Assembly: GCA_013416795.1 (NCBI GenBank)
Contig: RQSC01000018.1
Span: 193,274-257,273, forward strand
DNA length: 64,000 nt
Direction of reading: 5' to 3'
Origin: Prasinococcaceae sp. CCMP 1430
Lineage: Eukaryota > Plantae > Prasinodermophyta
This document shows, one piece after another, positions 32,522-61,042 of the stretch (within the stretch, counting starts at the first letter, position 1; every line of letters begins with the position of its first letter). The notes beneath the pieces are model-generated. The model did no database searches, was not told where the DNA came from, and was given only the letters and a program-made list of their open reading frames with translations. The position numbers and the translations under genes are program-made.

Positions 32522-32605
32522 CGCGCCGCGCCGCGATTCGAAAAAAAAGGCGGGCGCGCGCCCCCGCGCGCGCGCGCGCACGANNNNNNNNNNNNNNNNN
32601 NNNNN

Positions 32606-39991: not shown

Positions 39992-40578
39992 NNNNNNNNN
40001 NNNNNNNNNNNNNNNNNNNNNNNNNNNNNNNNNNNNNNNNNNNNNNNNNNNNNNNNNNNNNNNNNNNNNNNNNNNNNNNNNNNNNNNNNNNNNNNNNNNN
40101 NNNNNNNNNNNNNNNNNNNNNNNNNNNNNNNNNNNNNNNNNNNNNNNNNNNNNNNNNNNNNNNNNNNNNNNNNNNNNNNNNNNNNNNNNNNNNNNNNNNN
40201 NNNNNNNNNNNNNNNNNNNNNNNNNNNNNNNNNNNNNNNNNNNNNNNNNNNNNNNNNNNNNNNNNNNNNNNNNNNNNNNNNNNNNNNNNNNNNNNNNNNN
40301 NNNNNNNNNNNNNNNNNNNNNNNNNNNNNNNNNNNNNNNNNNNNNNNNNNNNNNNNNNNNNNNNNNNNNNNNNNNNNNNNNNNNNNNNNNNNNNNNNNNN
40401 NNNNNNNNNNNNNNNNNNNNNNNNNNNNNNNNNNNNNNNNNNNNNNNNNNNNNNNNNNNNNNNNNNNNNNNNNNNNNNNNNNNNNNNNNNNNNNNNNNNN
40501 NNNNNNNNNNNNNNNNNNNNNNNNNNNNNNNNNNNNNNNNNNNNNNNNNNNNNNNNNNNNNNNNNNNNNNNNNNNNNN
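39992..40578. other. Assembly gap (N run)
   Basis: About 587 consecutive n, flanked by a C-rich and (CT)n tract. Confidence 0.99.
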
Positions 40579-47485: not shown

Positions 47486-47593
47486 AGTATGCTTATCTAG
47501 TACAGTACTATCTATAGACTAGAGTGTGTACATGTTTTGCTAGCAGTCCGTGTCGCCTATCTAACCTTGGCAACTACCTGTGCCTCCTTGCAC

Positions 47594-50500
47594 CTACCCT
47601 GAGCATGATGCGCGCTGTCGGAGCGTCCTCGTGCACCTCTCGCCATAAAATGCGCGGTACGGCTCCGGCAGCTTGGCCAGCGCATCGCCTGCCTGCCTCG
47701 CCAGGCTGGCGGCCGCCTCGGCACGCACCGGGTCGCGATTGCCGTACAGGTCCTTGGCAGCGAGCTCGGAAGGCGCAAGCCCGCGCCAAAACACATTGGC
47801 AGAGACCGAAAAGTCATCGAGGGTGGCCACCGCATGCACCCAGAGCGCCGGAATGTACAAAGTGTCGCCAGGTCTGAGCACGCATTCGAGTGCGCCCATG
47901 TGCTGAGCCGCAGCGAGCATGTCGGCCTCGTCCAGCAGCCGCGTCGAGCTGCTGTCGGGTGCGATGCCGAGCGAAGTGGCTGCCGCTGGTGGGAAGAGCA
48001 GCACTCGCTTGCTGCCACGCAGCTGCACGAGTGCGTTTTCCATCACGTCGAAGTGGGGCCACAGGCTGCACCCAGGCGAGGTCACGCGAAGTATGCTCGA
48101 GTGATACCTCTCCGGGGCGTACAGCTCGCTCGGGAGCGCAACGCCTTGAGCAAGATCCGGGAAATCCTTTTCCAGATTCGCCCTGTCGCTGCGGGAGTCG
48201 CGTCCAACCGAACGTAGGTACAAGCATTGCGTTGAACGTGCAGCGCCGCCATTGGGGGAGGGGATCGCCGCGGCCTTGCGGACAAAGTCGCCGAAGCCCA
48301 TCCTGACGTACTTGAAGTTTTTCCCGACAAAGTCCAGCGCCGCAGTGTCGTTGCACTCGTGCACGGTGACACTCGCGCCGGCACACGCGCTTGCAGCCAT
48401 CCTCTCGGGGCTCCATGCGTCCGGGCCAGCTGGCAGAACCTTAAGCCCGGTGATCACGGCAGGCACCATGCCGTGCCGCAGGTCGGCGCCTATAGTACAC
48501 ACATCTCGTTCGCCTGCCTCCAGAACCCTCACACGCGCAGGCAAGGGCTTTGGACAAATGTGTCGCGCAGCATCGGCAGCGCCCGCAACCCCGGGTGTCC
48601 GCAGCAGCGGCGCCATGCCTGCCTTCGGGTAGCAGGCCACATCGACAACGATGTGATCCACGCGCGGTGCGTACGACTTAACCCGCTCGATGTGCTGCAC
48701 GATGCATCGCAGCGGTGGTCCGCCGCACGAGCGCGCCGTTGCAAGGCTCTCGAGCGACGCCGCGCAGCCTCGCGCCCACGTCTGGGTCTCGTCGGTGCGC
48801 ACGTTGGCGTGTACGTGCAGGATGCCGCCCTCGGGGCGCAGGGCCTCGACAGCTGTGTGCCAGGATTTCTCAGAAGTTGGTATCAGGCCGAGCAGGACAC
48901 GATGCGCGACGCCTTTGGGCGCCATTTTGCGGTTGTCGCCCTCACGTACCTCGCAGCGCGCCTCGACACCGTTCCGGCGCAGGTTGTGACGGAGCGCCTG
49001 CGCGGCGGGCGCATTCCACTCGCACGCCACCAGATGCGCCACACCCGCTCGCCGTAGCAGCGGTATGGTAAAGTATCCGATGCCTGCAAAGAGGTCTACC
49101 ACAGTTTCGCCCCGCGCATGCACGTCGCCCATGCGTCGCTTCTCCGTCCCATTTCCGGACGAGTACATGACCTGCGTCACGTCCAGGCCGTACACCACGC
49201 CGTTGTCGCGCACCTCCGTCCAGCCTCCGGATGCGGCCGCGCCCGAACGTGCGTACAGGATCGCGGCGCGGCTGTGGCGCTTCTCGCTGGCGTCAATCTC
49301 CGCCTGGCGCGCGAGGCGATTGCAGCCCAGTGCGCGCGCGACGACCTCCCAAATCGAGGGGGGTGCGTCCACGCCAGCTGTGGCAGCCGCCTCGATGTAG
49401 GGAGCCCACTCTTCGGCGGTGAATGCGCGCTGACTGAGCATGGCCACGTCGCCCAGCATCTCCCAACGCAGCGCTTTCGCCTCGGCGGCTGCGAGCGCAT
49501 CGGCAGCCCGGGCGTCGAGAGATCGCGTGCCTGCGGTGGTTGCGGCGCGCAGGTAGTCGCACAAGCCCACGCGCAGGGCATCGCGCGGCGTGAGCGATGT
49601 GCGAGTGAGCACAGCGCTCCGGCCGCCGTCGCCCTGGCCGCCCTCAACCCCGAACTCCTCATCGCGCACAACCCGCGCCTCGGAAACTCTGTCGAGAAGG
49701 CCGATCGCGGCAGCGAGTATCTGAAGGACGCGCACGTCGGCGTCGGATTCATCACTGCCATCGGCTGCCACGGCAAGCTCGCCATAGGTACTCGCCCCGG
49801 AGGCGGCCGAGCCAAGCACACCAACAGCGGCTGCGTGTACGATGGGCAAGACGACCTCGGTTTCTGTCACGGGTACGCGCATCGAGCGGTCAAGGAGCTT
49901 GGAGGACTTGAGCGCATCCTTCCACGCCTTGGCGCAGCGCTTGCGCACCGCGAGCGCCGCAGGCGGGGCGAGCGCGCACTGCGCGCTCACGTCGGTGGCG
50001 GGGGCGCCATCAGTGACGTTGAGCGCACCGAGCGCTGCAGGTATGTCGGAGCAGGTGGGAGCGTAGACACATGTGAGGTGGTCGAAGGCCTTCTCGAACC
50101 GCTCGATGCGCGCCCAGTTGTCGTGCATCTTGCCGTTAGATAGCCGCACGAGCGTGCGCAAGTACCGGTCGGACACAAGTAGCTCGCCGTTGAGCGCGAC
50201 AGGCACCTCGAGGCGCACCGAGCAGCGCACGCTGCAAACGTGGCGCTTGTTGGAGGGCGCAATGCCGGACTCCCGCAGGCCAGCGCCGACGGCCGCCGCC
50301 ACGAGCGCAGCGGCGGCTTGTGCAGAGCGGCACTCGACGGCGAGGATGAAGGGCTCGAAGCGCAGCGTCAGCGGCCCCGCGTGCGGCGAGGTATCGCGCG
50401 CGCAAGAGGCGGCTCTCACCACGGCCTCGGCGTCGGCGAGGCCGTGCTCGAGGTAGAGCCACTCGCCGCCGCCACGCTTGCGCTTTGGGTCGAAGTCGGT

Positions 50501-50767
50501 CTCGTCGCCGCCGTCGCCGCCAGGGGCGCGCGGCTCCTGGAAGAGCGCGAGCCTGCCAGAGCAGCTCGAGGTTGTGTAGTAGTCTTGCGAGGAGTTCACG
50601 CGCGCACAGAGCTCTTCCACGGGCGCGTCCACGCACCCCTTGCGACTACGGTCGACGCGCGCCGCTCCGTAGAGCGCCGTCATCGCTGCTGCGCGTCGCT
50701 GCTCAAACGCGGTGCCGCCGCCGCCGCCGCCGCCGCCGCATGCTGCCGCCGGCGTTGCCGCGACCAT
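47594..50767 (-). CDS. Wybutosine biosynthesis triple fusion TYW3 (methyltransferase) - TYW2 (aminocarboxypropyltransferase) - TYW5 (JmjC hydroxylase)
   Basis: TYW3: DRSRKGCVD..YYTTSSCSGR..FEPFILAVEC. TYW2: MYSSGNGTEKRRM..VVDLFAGIGYF..LGLIPTSE..VKSYAP. JmjC: LYLRSVG..LWPHFDVMEN..GSKRVLLFPP..LYIPALWVHAV. One uninterrupted 1057-aa ORF. Confidence 0.92.
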   Translation of the reverse strand: MVAATPAAACGGGGGGGGTAFEQRRAAAMTALYGAARVDRSRKGCVDAPVEELCARVNSSQDYYTTSSCSGRLALFQEPRAPGGDGGDETDFDPKRKRGGGEWLYLEHGLADAEAVVRAASCARDTSPHAGPLTLRFEPFILAVECRSAQAAAALVAAAVGAGLRESGIAPSNKRHVCSVRCSVRLEVPVALNGELLVSDRYLRTLVRLSNGKMHDNWARIERFEKAFDHLTCVYAPTCSDIPAALGALNVTDGAPATDVSAQCALAPPAALAVRKRCAKAWKDALKSSKLLDRSMRVPVTETEVVLPIVHAAAVGVLGSAASGASTYGELAVAADGSDESDADVRVLQILAAAIGLLDRVSEARVVRDEEFGVEGGQGDGGRSAVLTRTSLTPRDALRVGLCDYLRAATTAGTRSLDARAADALAAAEAKALRWEMLGDVAMLSQRAFTAEEWAPYIEAAATAGVDAPPSIWEVVARALGCNRLARQAEIDASEKRHSRAAILYARSGAAASGGWTEVRDNGVVYGLDVTQVMYSSGNGTEKRRMGDVHARGETVVDLFAGIGYFTIPLLRRAGVAHLVACEWNAPAAQALRHNLRRNGVEARCEVREGDNRKMAPKGVAHRVLLGLIPTSEKSWHTAVEALRPEGGILHVHANVRTDETQTWARGCAASLESLATARSCGGPPLRCIVQHIERVKSYAPRVDHIVVDVACYPKAGMAPLLRTPGVAGAADAARHICPKPLPARVRVLEAGERDVCTIGADLRHGMVPAVITGLKVLPAGPDAWSPERMAASACAGASVTVHECNDTAALDFVGKNFKYVRMGFGDFVRKAAAIPSPNGGAARSTQCLYLRSVGRDSRSDRANLEKDFPDLAQGVALPSELYAPERYHSSILRVTSPGCSLWPHFDVMENALVQLRGSKRVLLFPPAAATSLGIAPDSSSTRLLDEADMLAAAQHMGALECVLRPGDTLYIPALWVHAVATLDDFSVSANVFWRGLAPSELAAKDLYGNRDPVRAEAAASLARQAGDALAKLPEPYRAFYGERCTRTLRQRASCSG

Positions 50768-54130: not shown

Positions 54131-55185
54131 TTACGCGCGCTCAGCCTCGGCCTTTGCTCTCGCTGCGCACACGTCGATCCTGTCTAGGAGCCAGTGGTCC
54201 TTGGGCGCGCCCGCTGCCCACTCGCCGAGGCTCGCCTCATCGTCTACATCCACGAGCATCGGCAGCGTCGTCGCGGGCGCCACGGACGCACCCGCGGCGG
54301 CGAGTGCAGCTTCAGTGCGTGCGCGTACCTCGGATGTGCTCCATGGAATGTCCTCGAAGGCCTGCGGCACGCTGCGCCCCCCGAGTGCGAGCAAGTAGTA
54401 CCCACCGTCGGCGGCAGGGCCAATGCAAGCGTCGAAGCCGGGCGGGTGCTCTATGCCGCGCACTGCAGCGACTGCCGCGTTGATGGTGTCAGCGGTCAGG
54501 CCCGGCGCATCGCTGCCGATTGCGACGACGACGGGCACATCCGCCGCCTTTGCGGCGGGCTCGTCGCTCCCGTCCGCCTCCCCGCATGCGAACGCGTCCT
54601 CGAACGCGTGCGACAGCCTGGGTCCGAGGCCGTCCGCTTGGTGCTGCGCGACGACCTCATATTCCCGTGCGAGTGCGCCGCCGCGCAGTGACGCGACAAA
54701 CTTTCTCATCGCCCCTACCTCGCTTGCGTCCGCGACCATCAACGCCTTGCGCGTGAGCGCCGTCACACGCGCGCCCTCAACGAGCGTGTGCTCGAGCATG
54801 CGTGCGTAGAGCGCTGCGGCAGCGCCATCGCCGGCCGTCGCCGCGAGGCGTGTCTTCACCTTGCCCGCGACAGGCAGCCTCGCAAAGACAAGCAGTGACG
54901 TACTTGCCGGCGCTCGCGCCTTCGCAGCCCCCCCATAGCCCGCGTCCGCTTCCTCGGCAGCTTCCTGGGTGGCGCGCAGCAGCGGATGCGCACGGGAGGG
55001 AGGGGCGGTGTTAGAGCGCCTATGCGCCTCGAGGCTGCTCGCCCGTGCGGCCGCGTGCGCGGGCCGGCTGGGCGCGCCGTCACCTCAATGCCGTGCCCTT
55101 GCATTGCCGCCGAGGCCTCATTGATCGACACCGTCGGCAATTGCGTCGCCCTGCGGTACGACTCGCCAGTCCTGTTCGACGCCAT
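54131..55185 (-). CDS. DUF2064 / TIGR04282-type CofC-like transferase; 2 exons (55185-55084, 54964-54131)
   Basis: LVFARLPVAGKVKTRL, Q..GLGPRL..AF, AIGSDAP, GPAADGGYYLL, DIPWST, LVDVDD. Phase-0 GT-AG intron 54965-55083. Confidence 0.85.
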
Positions 55186-55527
55186 CGCGCGCGTGCCAGC
55201 GCGCACCGGCCGCGCGCGGCTGCAGACGCGCGTGAGCGCGCCAGTCGTGGGCCCGCCCACGCACGTGCAAGGTCGCAGGGGTGCGTCGGCAGGCAGCGCT
55301 CCCCAACGAGCGCGCAGAGAAGCTCTCGAGGCTGCGTGCGCACATACACACGCACACGTATGGCGCGAGCGCGGCGCCTTGCCCCGACCTCCGCGGCCGC
55401 AAGGTGTGCTCAGACGCACAGCCGGGAAATCCTCTCGCGGCATTGGCGGCGCCTGCAGCGGACTGCGCGTTGGCGGCAGAGGGTGCTGCGGGGCGACACG
55501 TTCACACGCGTGCGAGACTTTCGATGC

Positions 55528-58500
55528 TTACTCCACGCCAGGGACGTCTACGGCGCCGCGCTCCTTGTCTCCCTCGTCTCCTATCGCCGCCTCGGGCGCG
55601 TCGCTCAGGACTCGCACGAGGGTCTCGAGCATGGCGGTGCCGCCGGCGTCGGCTGCGGTCCGAAAGTCGCACCCCGCGGGCGTCTCCCGTGACCAGTTCA
55701 TGCTGGCGATTGTGATGTCGTCCGGGCAGCCACGATTGGCGCGCCGCACGCTGGCGAGGTAGGCCAAGTGAGCAGCGGCTCCTTTGGCCTTGACGCGCCG
55801 CACCGCTGCGGCAACCTCGGAGTCTTTGGCGACGTCCCAGAGGCCGTCCGACGCGACCACTAGCTGGGCCCAACCCACCGCGGGAGGCAGCCTGCCCAGG
55901 TCGACCTGGCACACGTGTGGCGTGCCCATGACGCAGGCGTGCGCACGCGCATCACCCAGCGAGCGGCTCACGGCGAGGCCCCCGGGGTACACGCGCAGCG
56001 GCCCGACCAGCATGCCCGTGGAGCGCTCCTGTATGCGTCCCACGACAGCCCCGGCGGCCCTGACGCGGCGGACCTCTGACTGCGAGTCTTCCGGGCGATG
56101 GTCCACAGAGAGGCGCACGTGCGCGGGTACGATGCCCTTGAAGAGGCCCGAGACGGCGCTGCCGCACTTCCCCCCGCTGCCTGGCCCAGCGCCCTCGTGC
56201 ACCTCGGGCGTGATCAGTACGCACCTCGAGTCGCCCGCGTTGGCGACTGTGACAACGTCGCCGACAATCACCACCACTGTAGCGGTAGCCCCCGCTTTGA
56301 CGCACGCGGCCTTGATCTCGGCGTCGAGTCGCTCCATGGCAGAGGTCAAAGCCGCGGGAAGAGCTGCCACGAGCGCCCCATCGGTCGTCGGCGACGCGCC
56401 TACTACGGGCGCCAGCGCGTCGAGCAGTGCAACCGGAAGGCGTTGGCGCGCCATCTCGGCTCCCTCGGCGCCACCGTGCCCGTCAAAAACACAGAACAGC
56501 CGCGCGCCCTTGAGCGCGCTCGCCTCGAGCTCTTCGTCGCTGAGGGTGCTGCGCCATTCGAGGTAAGTGCCGCCCACACCGCTTTTGGCCGCGCGCCTCC
56601 CCGAGGGCAGCACCAGCACGCGGTCCTCTCCCTTGGCACACCTGGCGTGCACACGCCAGTCGATCGTCCAGGGGCCATTGACTGGCGTGTCCGTTGAGCG
56701 GCGTGGGTGCGTGAACGAAATCATCTCGTCGCAGCTGCCGGGGGGCGCTGTGAGAGAACCCCCTGTTGCGGCGCTGCTGTGGCCCATGGCGGCCCGCTTG
56801 GCGTCGCATCTCCCCGCTGCCACGGCGCGCCGCAGGCGCAGCCTGGCTCTCGCTCCTCTCGCCGCCAATCTGGCCCAAGCAAGGCGAAGGCGCGCTCCAG
56901 CGAGCTCCCCACTCGTCATACCGGTGGAGACGTACTTGAACACTGGCTTGACGCTGGTCAGCAGGTTCGCGGGATTGTCCTCGATCCCGTCCCCTGTGTC
57001 GCGCGCCGCGCCCCCACGCGCCGAGCCCTCCCTTGCGAGCGAGTGCAGGTTCATCAGGAGCGCAACGATGTCCTCGCGCTCCATGATGCCGACGCGCTCT
57101 GTTGCACTCTCGAGCTCTTCATTCCCGGCTGCGCTGGCGGCGGCTCCTTGGCCTGGCGCGGTGTCCATGCCGCCAGAGCTGGGGGGCGCGCTCGCGAGCC
57201 AATCGACCGCCCAGAAGTAGCCCCCGACCACACCCATCGCCGTCACCAGCACCACTAGTGCTAGCGCCAGCCCCCCGAGGGCGCGCCACCCTACCGCGCT
57301 CGTCGCGTTTGCAGCGCCCGCGCCGTACACGACCCCCAAAAGCCCATTGTCGGTGACGGTGACCCCAAAGATCAAGCCTACGAGCGCACCCACACCGTGC
57401 ACGGCGATGGTGTTGAGTGCATCATCGATGCGCACGTTGGCGAGCGCGAGAGTGGCGGCCACGAAGCCCAGCCCTGCACAGGCTCCAATGAGCGCGGCCA
57501 CATGCAGGTCCACGGTGCCGGCGACTGCAGTGGCCGCCGCAGCGCCTGCGAGTGCCCCGCGCACGGCCGTGTAAGGCGCTAACACGCCGAAGCCTCGTCC
57601 GCGGTGCCACGAGACCACGGACACGGCGGCGCACGCTACAAGCGCGCCCGTGGCGGGCGCCATGACCAGCGCGGCTGTTGCGGCGCCGACAACGTCCGCA
57701 GAGCCCATTGTACCGCCTGCGACGAGAGCCCACGGTACCGCGAGCGCACCGCTCAGCAGCAAGCCCACGAGCAGCACGAGCGCGCTCACCCCACCGAGGC
57801 CGTCATTCGAGCCCTCGAGGCCGCTCGCAGGAGCGTCTTCATCACCGGTGCCCCTGGGCGCCTCTTCCTTCGAGGCGGCCGGCCTTGCAAAGCGCCGCCG
57901 GCCGCGCATGTCGCGGCGCGATCCACGCACCAGTGCCATCGCCAGCACGGCCGACCCCGCGGCGAGGTGGGTGCATGCCGCACCCCCTACGTCGAGCGCG
58001 CCCGTGGCTGCCAGCCCCCCCCCGCCACTTGCGCCGGGGGCGAGCGCGCCCCCGTGGGACCATGCGACGCGCATCGCCACAGGGCTCACCACGCCACCGA
58101 TGAGCGCGCCCAGCGAGGCGCTCGAGAGCATGGTGGGCGCGCGGTCCCCCGCCCCGGCAGACGCGACTGCCGCTGCCAACGCCGCCAACGCGGCCAGGTG
58201 CGCGCGCGCCAGCTCCATTTCGCCGCCCCCGCCTTCGATCGCACCGAGCCCCGTGGCGCCTCCCGCAGCAACCTGAGCTGCTTCACCCGCTACGCGCCAA
58301 CCCCACGCTGCGAAAGCGACCACGGCCGCAACGATGGCCACGACCGCGCGCCCTGCCTGCGCACCCGCGCCGCCCCCCGCCTGCACGCTGCCCGCGGCGC
58401 CCCCTCCGGCGCCGCACCCCCTCTGCCTTTGCTGCCGACGGCGGCCGTTGCGGAGGCGGCTCTGCGAGCCCAGGCGCTGGCTCTGGCGCCGCAGCCGCCG

Positions 58501-58588
58501 CAGCGGCGTGCTCTTCACCGTGACCTCCCGGAGCAGGAGGAAAGCGCGCGCCCGCCGCGCCCCGGGGAACGCAGCACAGACCCCTCAT
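55528..58588 (-). CDS. Ammonium-transporter (Amt) domain fused to a C-terminal PP2C phosphatase; start tentative (ATG 58588 via a short intron, or ATG 58218)
   Basis: Single open frame 58518-55528. The Amt part has RVAWSHGG, LDVGGAACTH, GALAGAAAAT and IDDALNTIAVHGVG. The PP2C part has GEDR, VFDGHGG, GATATV, ANAGDSR, SVDHRP, GLAVSRSLGD, ASDGLWD and DDITI. Confidence 0.88.
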
Positions 58589-58754
58589 CCGGGCGGGGCC
58601 GGGACGGCGCCGCGCCGCTCGGCCAACCGAACCGAATCGAACCAACCAGAAACGAGCAGCCCCTCTCGCAACTCAAGCACAGTCGTATCCTCGCGCCCAT
58701 ATGCGCCGCACGGCACGGTCGGACGGCCGAACCGTACGTGGGTACATTCAGTTA

Positions 58755-58786
58755 AACTGACTGTGTGGGTTCAACTGACTGTGTGG
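58755..58786. promoter_or_regulatory. 14-nt direct repeat AACTGACTGTGTGG (period 18) in the divergent AMT promoter
   Basis: Copies at 58755-58768 and 58773-58786, next to CCGTAC and GGTAC cores (about 58733-58745). Confidence 0.45.
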
Positions 58787-59236
58787 TCGGGCTCTCCCGT
58801 TCCAAAAGGCGCAGCCCACATGATGGGGCCTGTTCCCCGGCGGACCTCTCGCGAGGGGGCACCGGGCCAGGTCAGCGGCAGGTGCGCGCGGTCCCTCCAC
58901 CGCGGGGCGCCCGTGCGGGGCCTCGGGCGCCCGCGCGCATGCTCTGCACGCAGCATTCGGTTGGTCAACGCGCGGGGGCGCTGGGGCTCGGGTTGCGGCC
59001 CGGCAAATAATACGACGCCGCGGTGGCCCCACTCGCGGTGCCGCGCCACTTTGCGCCCCCGCCGCACCGCCACCCTGCGCCGCAGAGGCGCAGAGGCGGC
59101 AGCGGCGGTCGCTGCCGGGGGGAGGGGTCTGCGCGAAAGCTGCAGGGCAGAGCGGCGGCTCGTGCGAGGCGCGTTCACGAGCGCGCGCGCCCACTGCTGG
59201 CGGGGCGGGGTGGTGGGACGCGCGCGGGCAGCGGCG

Positions 59237-61042
59237 ATGGCAGGCGAGCTTGACGTGCTGGCGGCGCGCGTGACCGAGGCGGAGCGCGCCGCCAATGCCC
59301 TCTTCATGGCGACGGGGGTCGCGCTCGTGATGCTGATGCAGGCGGGCTTCGGCGCGCTGGAGGTGGGGGCGGTGCGTACCAAGAACACGCGCTCACTGAT
59401 GCTCAAGAACGTGATTGACTTCAGCGTCGGCACGATCATGTTCTGGCTGGTGGGGTACGGCGTGGCCTTCCCCGGCGCGGGCGCACGCGGCTTTGCGCTG
59501 CGCGGCAACGTTGCCGAGGTCGCGGGGGAGGGTGCGGGCGTCGCGGGCGAGGGCTCCTTCCTGCACTTCGCGCTCCTGCTTGCCTACGCGAGCACGAGCA
59601 CCACCATCGTGTCGGGCGCGCTCGCGGAGCGCACTCGTCTGAGCTCCTACGTGGTCTTCGCGGCACTGGCCTTTCCTTTTATGTCGGGTTTGCCGATGCG
59701 GTGGACGTGGGGCCACGAGGGGTGGCTGAATGCGGCGGCGCGCGACGGGGGCGGGGCGGCGCCGCAGCCGCAGCTACTCGACGTGGGTGTGGTCGACTTC
59801 GCGGGCAGCGGCGTCGTCCACATGGTGGGCGGCGTCGCGGCGGGCGTGGGCTCGTGGATGGTGGGCCCGCGACTCGACGAACGTGGGGTGGCACGCTTCG
59901 CAGAAGGCTGTCGCGAGGGCGACTTCATGCCTCACGCGCCCGCCTTAAGCACACTCGGCGCGCTGATCCTGTGGTTTTGCTGGTACGCCTTCAATGCCGC
60001 GTCCGCGCTTGGCGTGGTGGGCAGCGTGTCCGTGGTGGCTCGCGTGGTCGTGACCACCACCCTGGCGGCGGCGGCCTCAGGCTGCTCAGGCTTTGTCGCC
60101 TTCCTGGTCTTGCCCGCGCAAGTGCAACCCTTCGAGATGATCAATTGCCTGCTTGCCGGTCTCGTGGCGGTCACAGCGGGTTGCCCGGTGCTGAGCAACT
60201 GGGCGGCAGTCGTGGTGGGCGTGCTAGCGGCCGCTGTGTACTTGGGCTCCTCACGCCTCGCGCGCCGCATGGGCGTGGATGACCCCGTGGACGCCGCTGC
60301 GCTCCACGGCTGCTGCGGCGCGCTGGGAGTGCTAATGGCAGGATTGCTTGCGGACGCCGAGCTGCTGGAGTCGACCTACGGCGCTGGTGCGGGGCGTGCT
60401 GGCGCTTACGGCGTGCTCCTCGGCGGCGGGTGGCGACGGATGGGTGCGCAGGTGGTGGGCGTGTGTGTGTATGGCGCGTGGGGGCTGGCGCTCAGCCTCG
60501 TACTATTCGGCGCGCTCAAGCGCTCGCGTATCGTGTGGTGGGCACGCATGAAGAAAGCCGAACAGGACGGCCTCGACCTGTCGCTGTTCACGCGCGAGGA
60601 GCTGGTGGAGCGCTTCGGGAACGGCCTGCGCGTGTGCGCGCACGAGGAAATGAGCGGCATCGACGTGAGCTACCACGACGGGCTGGCGTACCCGCCGTAT
60701 CTCACGCCCTTCATCGACAGCATCAATGTGCTGCGCGAGCTGCAGCTGGCCTCGATGTGGGGCACCCTTCCCATACCACCGAGCGCCCCGGGCGAAGAGA
60801 GCGGCAGAGACGGCAGCGAGGACGCCGACGACTCGTCCGCCAGGGGTCAGGCGGGGTCGACGGGCTTCGACCTGCTTCTTCGCCCCCGCGTGACCGACTC
60901 CAACAGGCAGCCCCTCGCAGCACGCGGCGCAGCGTACAAGCCCGACATGCGCCGCCGCTGGGGGAAGGGGGTGGCGGCCCCGCTCGCCGCGCCCACCGCC
61001 GCGGACGGTGCGCTCGCGCGCAAGACCGACGAGTCGCCGTGA
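59237..61042 (+). CDS. AMT1: Ammonium transporter, AMT1 type
   Basis: MQAGFGALEVGAVR.KN, TIVSGALAER, DFAGSGVVHMVGG, LILWFCWYAFN, LAGLVAVTAGC, DDPVDAAALHG, LRV..EEMSGIDVSYH. Confidence 0.94.
   Translation: MAGELDVLAARVTEAERAANALFMATGVALVMLMQAGFGALEVGAVRTKNTRSLMLKNVIDFSVGTIMFWLVGYGVAFPGAGARGFALRGNVAEVAGEGAGVAGEGSFLHFALLLAYASTSTTIVSGALAERTRLSSYVVFAALAFPFMSGLPMRWTWGHEGWLNAAARDGGGAAPQPQLLDVGVVDFAGSGVVHMVGGVAAGVGSWMVGPRLDERGVARFAEGCREGDFMPHAPALSTLGALILWFCWYAFNAASALGVVGSVSVVARVVVTTTLAAAASGCSGFVAFLVLPAQVQPFEMINCLLAGLVAVTAGCPVLSNWAAVVVGVLAAAVYLGSSRLARRMGVDDPVDAAALHGCCGALGVLMAGLLADAELLESTYGAGAGRAGAYGVLLGGGWRRMGAQVVGVCVYGAWGLALSLVLFGALKRSRIVWWARMKKAEQDGLDLSLFTREELVERFGNGLRVCAHEEMSGIDVSYHDGLAYPPYLTPFIDSINVLRELQLASMWGTLPIPPSAPGEESGRDGSEDADDSSARGQAGSTGFDLLLRPRVTDSNRQPLAARGAAYKPDMRRRWGKGVAAPLAAPTAADGALARKTDESP

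Follow-up and report, generated by a model that had tools for sequence, protein, structure and literature searches.

The window analyzed here, a stretch of 64,000 nucleotides from Prasinococcaceae sp. CCMP 1430 (assembly GCA_013416795.1, contig RQSC01000018.1, positions 193,274 to 257,273), carries on its minus strand a gene in which a diverged ammonium transporter (Amt)-like membrane domain and a PP2C-type protein phosphatase are encoded by one reading frame. The fused protein is very probably real and made as a single polypeptide. In the interpretation that we prefer, and to which we assign a probability of roughly 0.45, the Amt-like domain is an ammonium sensor that switches the attached phosphatase. 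Amt modules fused to signaling enzymes were known, and the Prasinoderma gene is publicly annotated, though undescribed. It differs from every characterized Amt fusion in its eukaryotic host, its eukaryotic-type PP2C output, its degenerate pore, and the absence of the so-called N1/N2 site.

One Reading Frame Spans Both Domains

According to the listing of open reading frames (ORFs), the frame is free of stops over 996 codons (window 55528-58518, minus strand), and upstream of 58518 it stays open to approximately 58588. The single stop-free frame reported by the first-pass annotation, a reading of the letters without database searches, was thereby recovered. Its parts are listed below.

55528 to 58518, minus strand: whole Amt-like/PP2C frame, 996 codons plus the stop codon TAA at 55528-55530
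57199 to 58419, minus strand: Amt-like membrane domain of 11 helices, ORF residues 34-440 (supported by Pfam, PDB profile, AmtB alignment, AlphaFold2, Foldseek, and polymorphism ratios)
56659 to 57198, minus strand: linker, ORF residues 441-620, poorly conserved in sequence
55699 to 56658, minus strand: PP2C/PPM catalytic domain, ORF residues 621-940 (supported by Pfam, PDB matches, AlphaFold2, Foldseek, and polymorphism ratios)
55531 to 55698, minus strand: variable C-terminal tail, residues 941-996, predicted to be disordered

Within this one frame, Pfam matched both PF00909 (Ammonium_transp) and PF00481 (PP2C), each above its cut-off. The PF00481 match covers residues 658-913 (E 3.7e-30, 105.9 bits against a cut-off of 20.3), while the PF00909 match (E 2.6e-13, 49.9 bits against 23.2) falls mainly on profile positions 200-365. 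A diverged Amt joined to a PP2C, as had been proposed from the letters, is thus what the family models recognize as well. The frame corresponds to P0003 (EukProt EP00793, Prasinoderma coloniale PRCOL_00000477-RA), to which it is completely identical over residues 2-963; PRCOL_00000477-RA is also the sole named member of the protein cluster that the frame matched. On this identity, the window was assigned to the P. coloniale reference assembly.

Evidence for a Single Fused Protein

A second P. coloniale gene, PRCOL_00004094-RA (P0093, 990 residues), is located elsewhere in the genome and encodes a paralog. Its cluster includes P0031 (991 residues), in which the same two Pfam domains are found and PF00909 scores 91.6 bits. 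The two paralogs align end to end over 995 columns with 35% identity (E 5e-121) and show an identical domain order. Since the MAKER model (990 residues) and the plain metagenome ORF calls (991 residues) agree, the paralog consists of a single uninterrupted exon. Its linker has no in-frame stop, compared with 7 and 9 stops in the other two forward frames. When 1.84 billion representative sequences were searched exhaustively by HMMER with the Amt domain plus linker, two strong matches were obtained, namely the cluster of the gene itself and P0031 (E 1e-47); among these representatives, the Amt-PP2C architecture was seen in one genus only. PRCOL_00004094 is followed, tail to tail, by an ORF of 728 residues for which no domain is recorded (L005:3373-5559, minus strand).

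Environmental copies of the window gene were available on four Tara metagenome/Logan contigs (L001-L004), which carry it at 98.6-99.4% nucleotide identity, with neither a frameshift nor a stop. Among these copies, nine synonymous and two nonsynonymous polymorphisms were counted in the Amt domain and the same numbers in the PP2C domain, corresponding to ratios of nonsynonymous to synonymous polymorphism (pN/pS) of 0.09 and 0.08, respectively. This shows purifying selection on both domains; the counts are small, and their direction is clear for both. The C-terminal tail, with seven nonsynonymous and no synonymous changes, looks unconstrained, and its pLDDT (predicted local distance difference test) score in the AlphaFold2 model is below 50. 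The distribution of guanine plus cytosine (GC) over codon positions is alike in the Amt domain, the linker, and the PP2C domain, with a GC content of about 0.8 at third positions. Given the paralog, the conservation of the frame in the Tara contigs, the polymorphism, and the coding signal of the linker, the fusion does not stem from an artefact of ORF calling.

The PP2C Domain

All four metal-binding Asp motifs pointed out in the first-pass annotation are present where it had placed them: GEDR (56631-56620), FDGHGG (56487-56470; given there as FDGH), SDGLWD (55851-55834), and DDITI (55722-55708). The domain also has a GDSR motif. The metal-coordinating GED, DGHGG, DG.WD, and DD motifs occur in both paralogs, and in an alignment of 30 PP2C sequences their columns are invariant or nearly so. 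Judged by these motifs, the PP2C domain looks catalytically competent and Mg/Mn-dependent.

In the AlphaFold2 model, the PP2C core reaches a pLDDT above 90, and Foldseek aligned it to ABI1 with E 3e-19 and a TM-score of 0.79 (target-normalized). The best sequence matches in the PDB were ABI1, ABI2, OsPP2C50, and HAB1, at E 3e-18 to 1e-12; the match to clade-A PP2Cs (ABI1, ABI2, HAB1) may reflect no more than which PP2C structures the PDB contains. The nearest database relatives are stand-alone PP2Cs of green algae (Micromonas pusilla, Bathycoccus, Bryopsis, and Ostreobium) with 30-40% identity, which argues for a green-lineage origin of the domain and not for a bacterial SpoIIE. Pfam gave no match to PF07228 in the fusion. 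Amt proteins have their N-terminus outside and their C-terminus inside the cell, and this topology places the PP2C domain in the cytoplasm.

The Amt-Like Domain

The assignment of the membrane domain to the Amt family is based on profile as well as on structure comparison. Among PDB entries, a profile of the two paralogs retrieved Ks-Amt5, Af-Amt1, Mep2, Sd-Amt1, and AmtB with E values between 1e-12 and 1e-6, the top match being 6eu6. An AlphaFold2 model built from a 40-sequence alignment contains 11 long helices (pLDDT 83.5, predicted template modeling score 0.89). When this model was submitted to Foldseek, the top 50 matches and all matches with E<1e-4 were Amt/Mep/Rh proteins. The best among them were Sd-Amt1, Ks-Amt5, Af-Amt1, and AmtB, with TM-scores of up to 0.79 (target-normalized).

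Individual residues were compared in a MAFFT alignment with E. coli AmtB (from NC_000913), the neighboring AMT1 described below, and seven other Amts. In AmtB numbering, both paralogs keep W148, D160, H168, D309/D310, and H318, and the columns of D160, H168, and H318 show no variation across the two paralogs and all aligned Amts. The first-pass annotation had listed W148, D160, and both pore histidines as kept, with the latter in CTHL (57975-57964) and AVHG (57405-57394), and the alignment agrees. It had further reported that the W212-x-x-F215-N segment is replaced by VGLLLSG (57768-57748). This stands for F215 and N216, which are lost under either alignment. W212, which the earlier ungapped alignment would lose, is kept in both paralogs if gaps are allowed, as MAFFT aligns a 'VPW' past a 10-residue insertion. 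The Phe gate and its neighbors are lost more broadly than had been noted: F103 is changed to H, F107 to L, F215 to V or A, N216 to A or a gap, and S219 to T or a gap, the losses of F103, F107, and S219 being additional to those reported before. With both gate phenylalanines, N216, S219, and also the motif of the first transmembrane helix (TM1; see below) gone, the Amt module has, to judge from its residues, most likely ceased to act as a bulk transporter.

The C-terminal regulatory motif LRV..E..G.D..H.G, which occurs after TM11 in the neighboring AMT1 and in AmtB, was not found in either fusion, although one of the two has a GMD that might, doubtfully, be a remnant. A tree built from Amt domains groups the two fusions as sisters with a support of 100. 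Their stem has a length of 2.5 substitutions per site, is joined to another long branch, and lies outside the AmtB-like clade.

The Linker

The linker of approximately 180 residues is partly helical in the AlphaFold2 model. Three helices with a pLDDT of about 80 (P0001 residues 488-508, 523-538, and 543-584; approximately window 56788-57078) come first, after which there is a disordered stretch before the very confident PP2C core. Neither a HAMP domain nor any other Pfam domain was found when the linker alone was searched. In Sd-Amt1 (PMC11152129) and in the SAR11 protein Amt-GI5 (PMC11796062), the sensor is joined to the output by a helical linker.

Proposed Function and Alternatives

The function that we propose involves the gene next to the fusion. 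Two further features are therefore needed here.

59237 to 61042, plus strand: canonical AMT1-type ammonium transporter, 601 residues (PF00909, E 5e-83)
58519 to 59236, no strand assigned: upstream region common to the two divergent genes, also seen in the Tara contigs L002 and L003

AMT1 and the fusion stand head-to-head across approximately 0.7-0.8 kb, an arrangement that the Tara contigs share. The C-terminal motif of AMT1 is LRV..EEMSGIDVSYHDG, and its C-terminus reads LRVCAHEEMSGIDVSYHDG, the Ser of which we take to correspond in position to the T460 phospho-switch of AtAMT1;1. The full N1/N2 signature, a receptor signature defined further below, is present in this AMT1 and in P0032; plant AMT1s also carry it. 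Unusually, some 35 residues (RIVWWARMKKAEQDGLDLSLFTREELVERFGNG) are inserted in the neighboring AMT1 between TM11 and the conserved C-terminal motif.

In the proposed mechanism, the 11-helix Amt-fold domain, the linker, and the cytoplasmic PP2C form one membrane-anchored polypeptide. Ammonium would occupy the vestigial pore, and pore occupancy would alter the conformation of the cytoplasmic face and of the linker. This conformational change would switch the attached PP2C, which in turn would dephosphorylate targets in nitrogen uptake, the most obvious being the C-terminal phospho-switch of the neighboring AMT1 or the kinase acting on it.

Precedents exist for both halves of this scheme. Amt modules have been repurposed as receptors in Ks-Amt5 (PMC5764959) and Sd-Amt1 (PMC11152129), and the Arabidopsis PP2C ABI1 binds AMT1;1 and AMT1;2 and reduces their C-terminal phosphorylation (PMC9516733). 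Passing a change in the Amt domain through the linker to the output would be in keeping with what is established for Ks-Amt5 and Sd-Amt1 (PMC5764959, PMC11152129) and proposed for SAR11 Amt-GI5 (PMC11796062). We infer ligand binding, its coupling to the phosphatase, and the substrate as follows. The external Trp, D160, and the twin-His are kept under selection, and the reason may be that ammonium can still get into the vestigial pore or be bound there. The C-terminal phospho-site of AMT1, or its kinase, would be the likeliest substrate because ABI1 acts on AMT1s in Arabidopsis and because the fusion has its upstream region in common with AMT1. The most specific version of this interpretation, a eukaryotic receptor-phosphatase of independent origin in which a pore-derived site, as opposed to the N1/N2 site, gates the PP2C and thereby resets the phospho-switch of a co-regulated head-to-head AMT1, appears unlikely in its entirety.

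Several observations weigh against the sensor interpretation. The published N1/N2 receptor signature, formulated as the regular expression QX6EX15NX2D[F/T]X54-60TX2[S/T] (from PMC11152129), was absent from the window ORF, P0001, and P0093, where a search for the first half by itself was likewise negative, and thus any sensing must use a different site. The TM1 motif GFA.LEAG.VR.KN is lost, and the stretch is now rich in Gly and Ala; the very long Amt branch would be equally expected of a domain that is decaying into a membrane anchor. A BLASTP comparison of the linkers of the two paralogs was not significant (E 0.55), so that conservation of the linker cannot be used as evidence, and linker polymorphism, with four nonsynonymous and no synonymous changes, looks unconstrained. 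Moreover, the first in-frame ATG of the window copy comes no earlier than residue 101, and its TM1 has the N-terminal half replaced, from which it follows that the copy of the reference strain may be damaged or misassembled. The segment concerned is the following.

58424 to 58542, minus strand: window-specific 5' segment of 119 nucleotides, in place of which the Tara contigs have an unrelated segment of 216 nucleotides

The ATG lies in the 216-nucleotide Tara segment, as do the first 39 codons (MVEAAE...GCAGA), which comprise the N-terminal half of TM1. This N-terminus aligns with that of the paralog and makes up the initial half of the long TM1 helix that AlphaFold2 models with confidence. 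The codon at 58420-58422 is AGG in the window and ATG in the Tara contigs, and the public model PRCOL_00000477 places its starting M at this AGG. No Tara-type N-terminal segment was found elsewhere in the 64-kb window by blastn and tblastn. The idea that the 119-nucleotide segment is an inverted or shifted form of the Tara segment was rejected, as there is no such match. The discrepancy may be due to an error in assembly or polishing, to a split start codon, or to a real lesion in the cultured strain.

The main rival to the sensor interpretation is a targeting scaffold. Here, the Amt-like domain would join mixed AMT1 trimers and hold the PP2C beside the phospho-sites, which would keep the transporter active, and ammonium binding would be unneeded. 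We consider this doubtful, though it draws on several of the findings above. In the fused module, transport motifs and receptor motifs are largely decayed, while the Amt fold is retained in the AlphaFold2 model and with it, possibly, a trimer interface. A head-to-head AMT1 is at hand whose C-terminal Ser presumably occupies the position of the phospho-switch. The direct binding of AMT1s by ABI1 in Arabidopsis (PMC9516733) would fit a scaffold, too. Yet W148, D160, and the pore histidines, which are buried or pore residues and have no role in trimer contacts, are invariant between paralogs that retain 35% identity. Furthermore, the upstream sequence available for the second paralog amounts to only 323 nucleotides, in which its neighbor is not visible.

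It is improbable that the fused module still works as an unusual transporter or channel for ammonium or methylammonium, with its pore open in the absence of the Phe gate and with a phosphatase that regulates it or signals the flux, as in a transceptor. The retention of the twin-His, D160, and W148, the intact Amt fold in AlphaFold2 and Foldseek, and the purifying selection on the Amt domain would all be compatible with such activity. F215, however, is lost whichever alignment is used, and in the AmtB mutant work behind PDB 3c1g-3c1j, substitutions of F215 reportedly abolish transport. The module is further without N216, S219, and the conserved TM1 motif, and the Pfam match is strong only for the C-terminal half of the Amt domain.

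An artefact or dead gene, that is, a chance read-through of two adjacent genes in a window of about 70% GC or a pseudogene of the reference strain, is highly improbable: long ORFs on all frames at this GC content, a linker without synonymous polymorphism, the AGG and the replaced segment at the 5' end, an over-merged public model at the 3' end, and a draft scaffold with N gaps would agree with it, but an uninterrupted frame and a domain order are common to paralogs diverged to 35% identity, four independent environmental assemblies keep the frame, downstream of the 5' lesion the window copy has no stops or frameshifts, both domains show a strong signal of selection, and the Amt part, which has no in-frame stop, could end as a gene of its own only by splicing.

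Comparison with Known Systems

The characterized relatives closest in design are bacterial. Ks-Amt5 of Kuenenia stuttgartiensis (Amt-histidine kinase) and Sd-Amt1 of Shewanella denitrificans (Amt-HAMP-diguanylate cyclase) consist, like the fusion described here, of an Amt with a signaling enzyme fused to its C-terminus. Both keep all canonical pore motifs and have in addition the N1/N2 site, on which the only Amt-receptor mechanism established by structures is based, whereas the Prasinoderma fusions have neither the signature nor the Phe gate, and their output is a phosphatase instead of a kinase (Ks-Amt5) or a cyclase (Sd-Amt1).

Annotations of Amt-PPM fusions in SAR11 bacteria date back to 2010 (PMC2944026), and a discussion of them followed in 2025 (PMC11796062), their role as sensors being a proposal. 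The first-pass annotation had counted fusions to a histidine kinase, a diguanylate cyclase, and a SpoIIE-type phosphatase as established ammonium sensors; this holds for the first two, while for the SpoIIE type the papers retrieved only propose it (PMC11796062, PMC2944026). The SAR11/Pelagibacter proteins Amt-GI5, SAR11_0049, and SAR11_0050 (Amt plus SpoIIE) resemble the Prasinoderma fusion in that an N-terminal Amt of 11 transmembrane helices is followed by a helical linker and a C-terminal cytoplasmic PPM phosphatase. They differ from it in three respects. The SAR11 fusions belong to bacteria and have canonical specificity residues in their Amt, whereas the Prasinoderma Amt is strongly degenerate. 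Their phosphatase is annotated as SpoIIE/IPR001932, whereas the Prasinoderma PP2C matches the eukaryotic PF00481 only. Finally, their linker is described as HAMP-like, in contrast to the Prasinoderma linker, which has no recognizable domain. Compared by description and domain matches, the two kinds of fusion are most likely of independent, convergent origin.

Among eukaryotes, two systems invite comparison. In plants, AMT1s are switched by C-terminal phosphorylation and acted on by a PP2C (AMT1/CIPK23/ABI1; PMC9516733), and the neighbor of the Prasinoderma fusion is of the AMT1 type. The plant PP2C, however, is a separate, soluble protein under the control of the abscisic acid receptor, whereas the Prasinoderma PP2C is covalently joined to an Amt-like domain. 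The fungal transceptor Mep2 is likewise a eukaryotic Amt which is proposed to signal and to bind ammonium and which has a phospho-regulated C-terminal region. Unlike the Prasinoderma fusion, it carries no attached enzyme, and with its pore intact it transports competently.

No description of a eukaryotic Amt-PP2C fusion was found in the literature searched, and sequence searches outside Prasinoderma did not reveal the architecture, although fusions of a canonical Amt to an unrelated PP2C would be missed by them; the first-pass annotation had known of no such fusion either. Word-indexed homolog searches with the whole protein and with a profile of the fusions and canonical Amts gave almost nothing, a blank that says little as Ala/Gly-rich words filled the limit of 8000 candidates. 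A scan of JGI metagenomes with the two-paralog profile returned one weak PP2C fragment only. Eukaryotic Amts with fused modules have been stated to exist, albeit unlisted (PMC11152129).

A receptor ('transceptor') role of eukaryotic Amt/Mep proteins has been argued for years, with indirect evidence from Mep2 and plant AMT1s. An Amt fold wired directly to an enzymatic output in a eukaryote would make this question testable in vitro. If the most specific version of the sensor interpretation is true, the arrangement would be a sensor-effector pair at one locus and a natural demonstration of Amt folds as receptors in eukaryotes. A protein of this kind would also be linked to the control of the AMT1 phospho-switch by plant PP2Cs, and the design of an Amt plus a phosphatase would have arisen twice, in SAR11 bacteria and in an early-branching green alga.

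The 3' End and Other Features of the Window

The public model of 1288 residues (Amt-PP2C-DUF2064) was rejected as probably over-merged. It bypasses the TAA, which is sited within a donor-like GTAAG site, and enters DUF2064 (PF09837) through a bridging exon at 55078-55218, the merged stretch lying at window 54134-55530 on the minus strand. All five environmental polymorphisms of the bridging exon fall on codon positions 1-2, as opposed to the DUF2064 exon, where 10 of 12 fall on position 3. Since its polymorphisms are confined to the first two codon positions, the bridge is probably non-coding. The DUF2064 gene is located downstream of the fusion on the same strand. In its own frame, no ATG is present upstream of VKTRL.

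The window is part of a draft scaffold, in which runs of N at 32584-32605 and 39992-40578 represent scaffold gaps. A block of low GC content at 40-42 kb was rejected as a real feature, as it corresponds to an N gap. Window positions 47583-50767 are matched by the Tara contig L002 (14796-17969), which holds an intact ORF of 1057 residues with matches to TYW3, TYW2 methyltransferase, and Cupin_8/JmjC.

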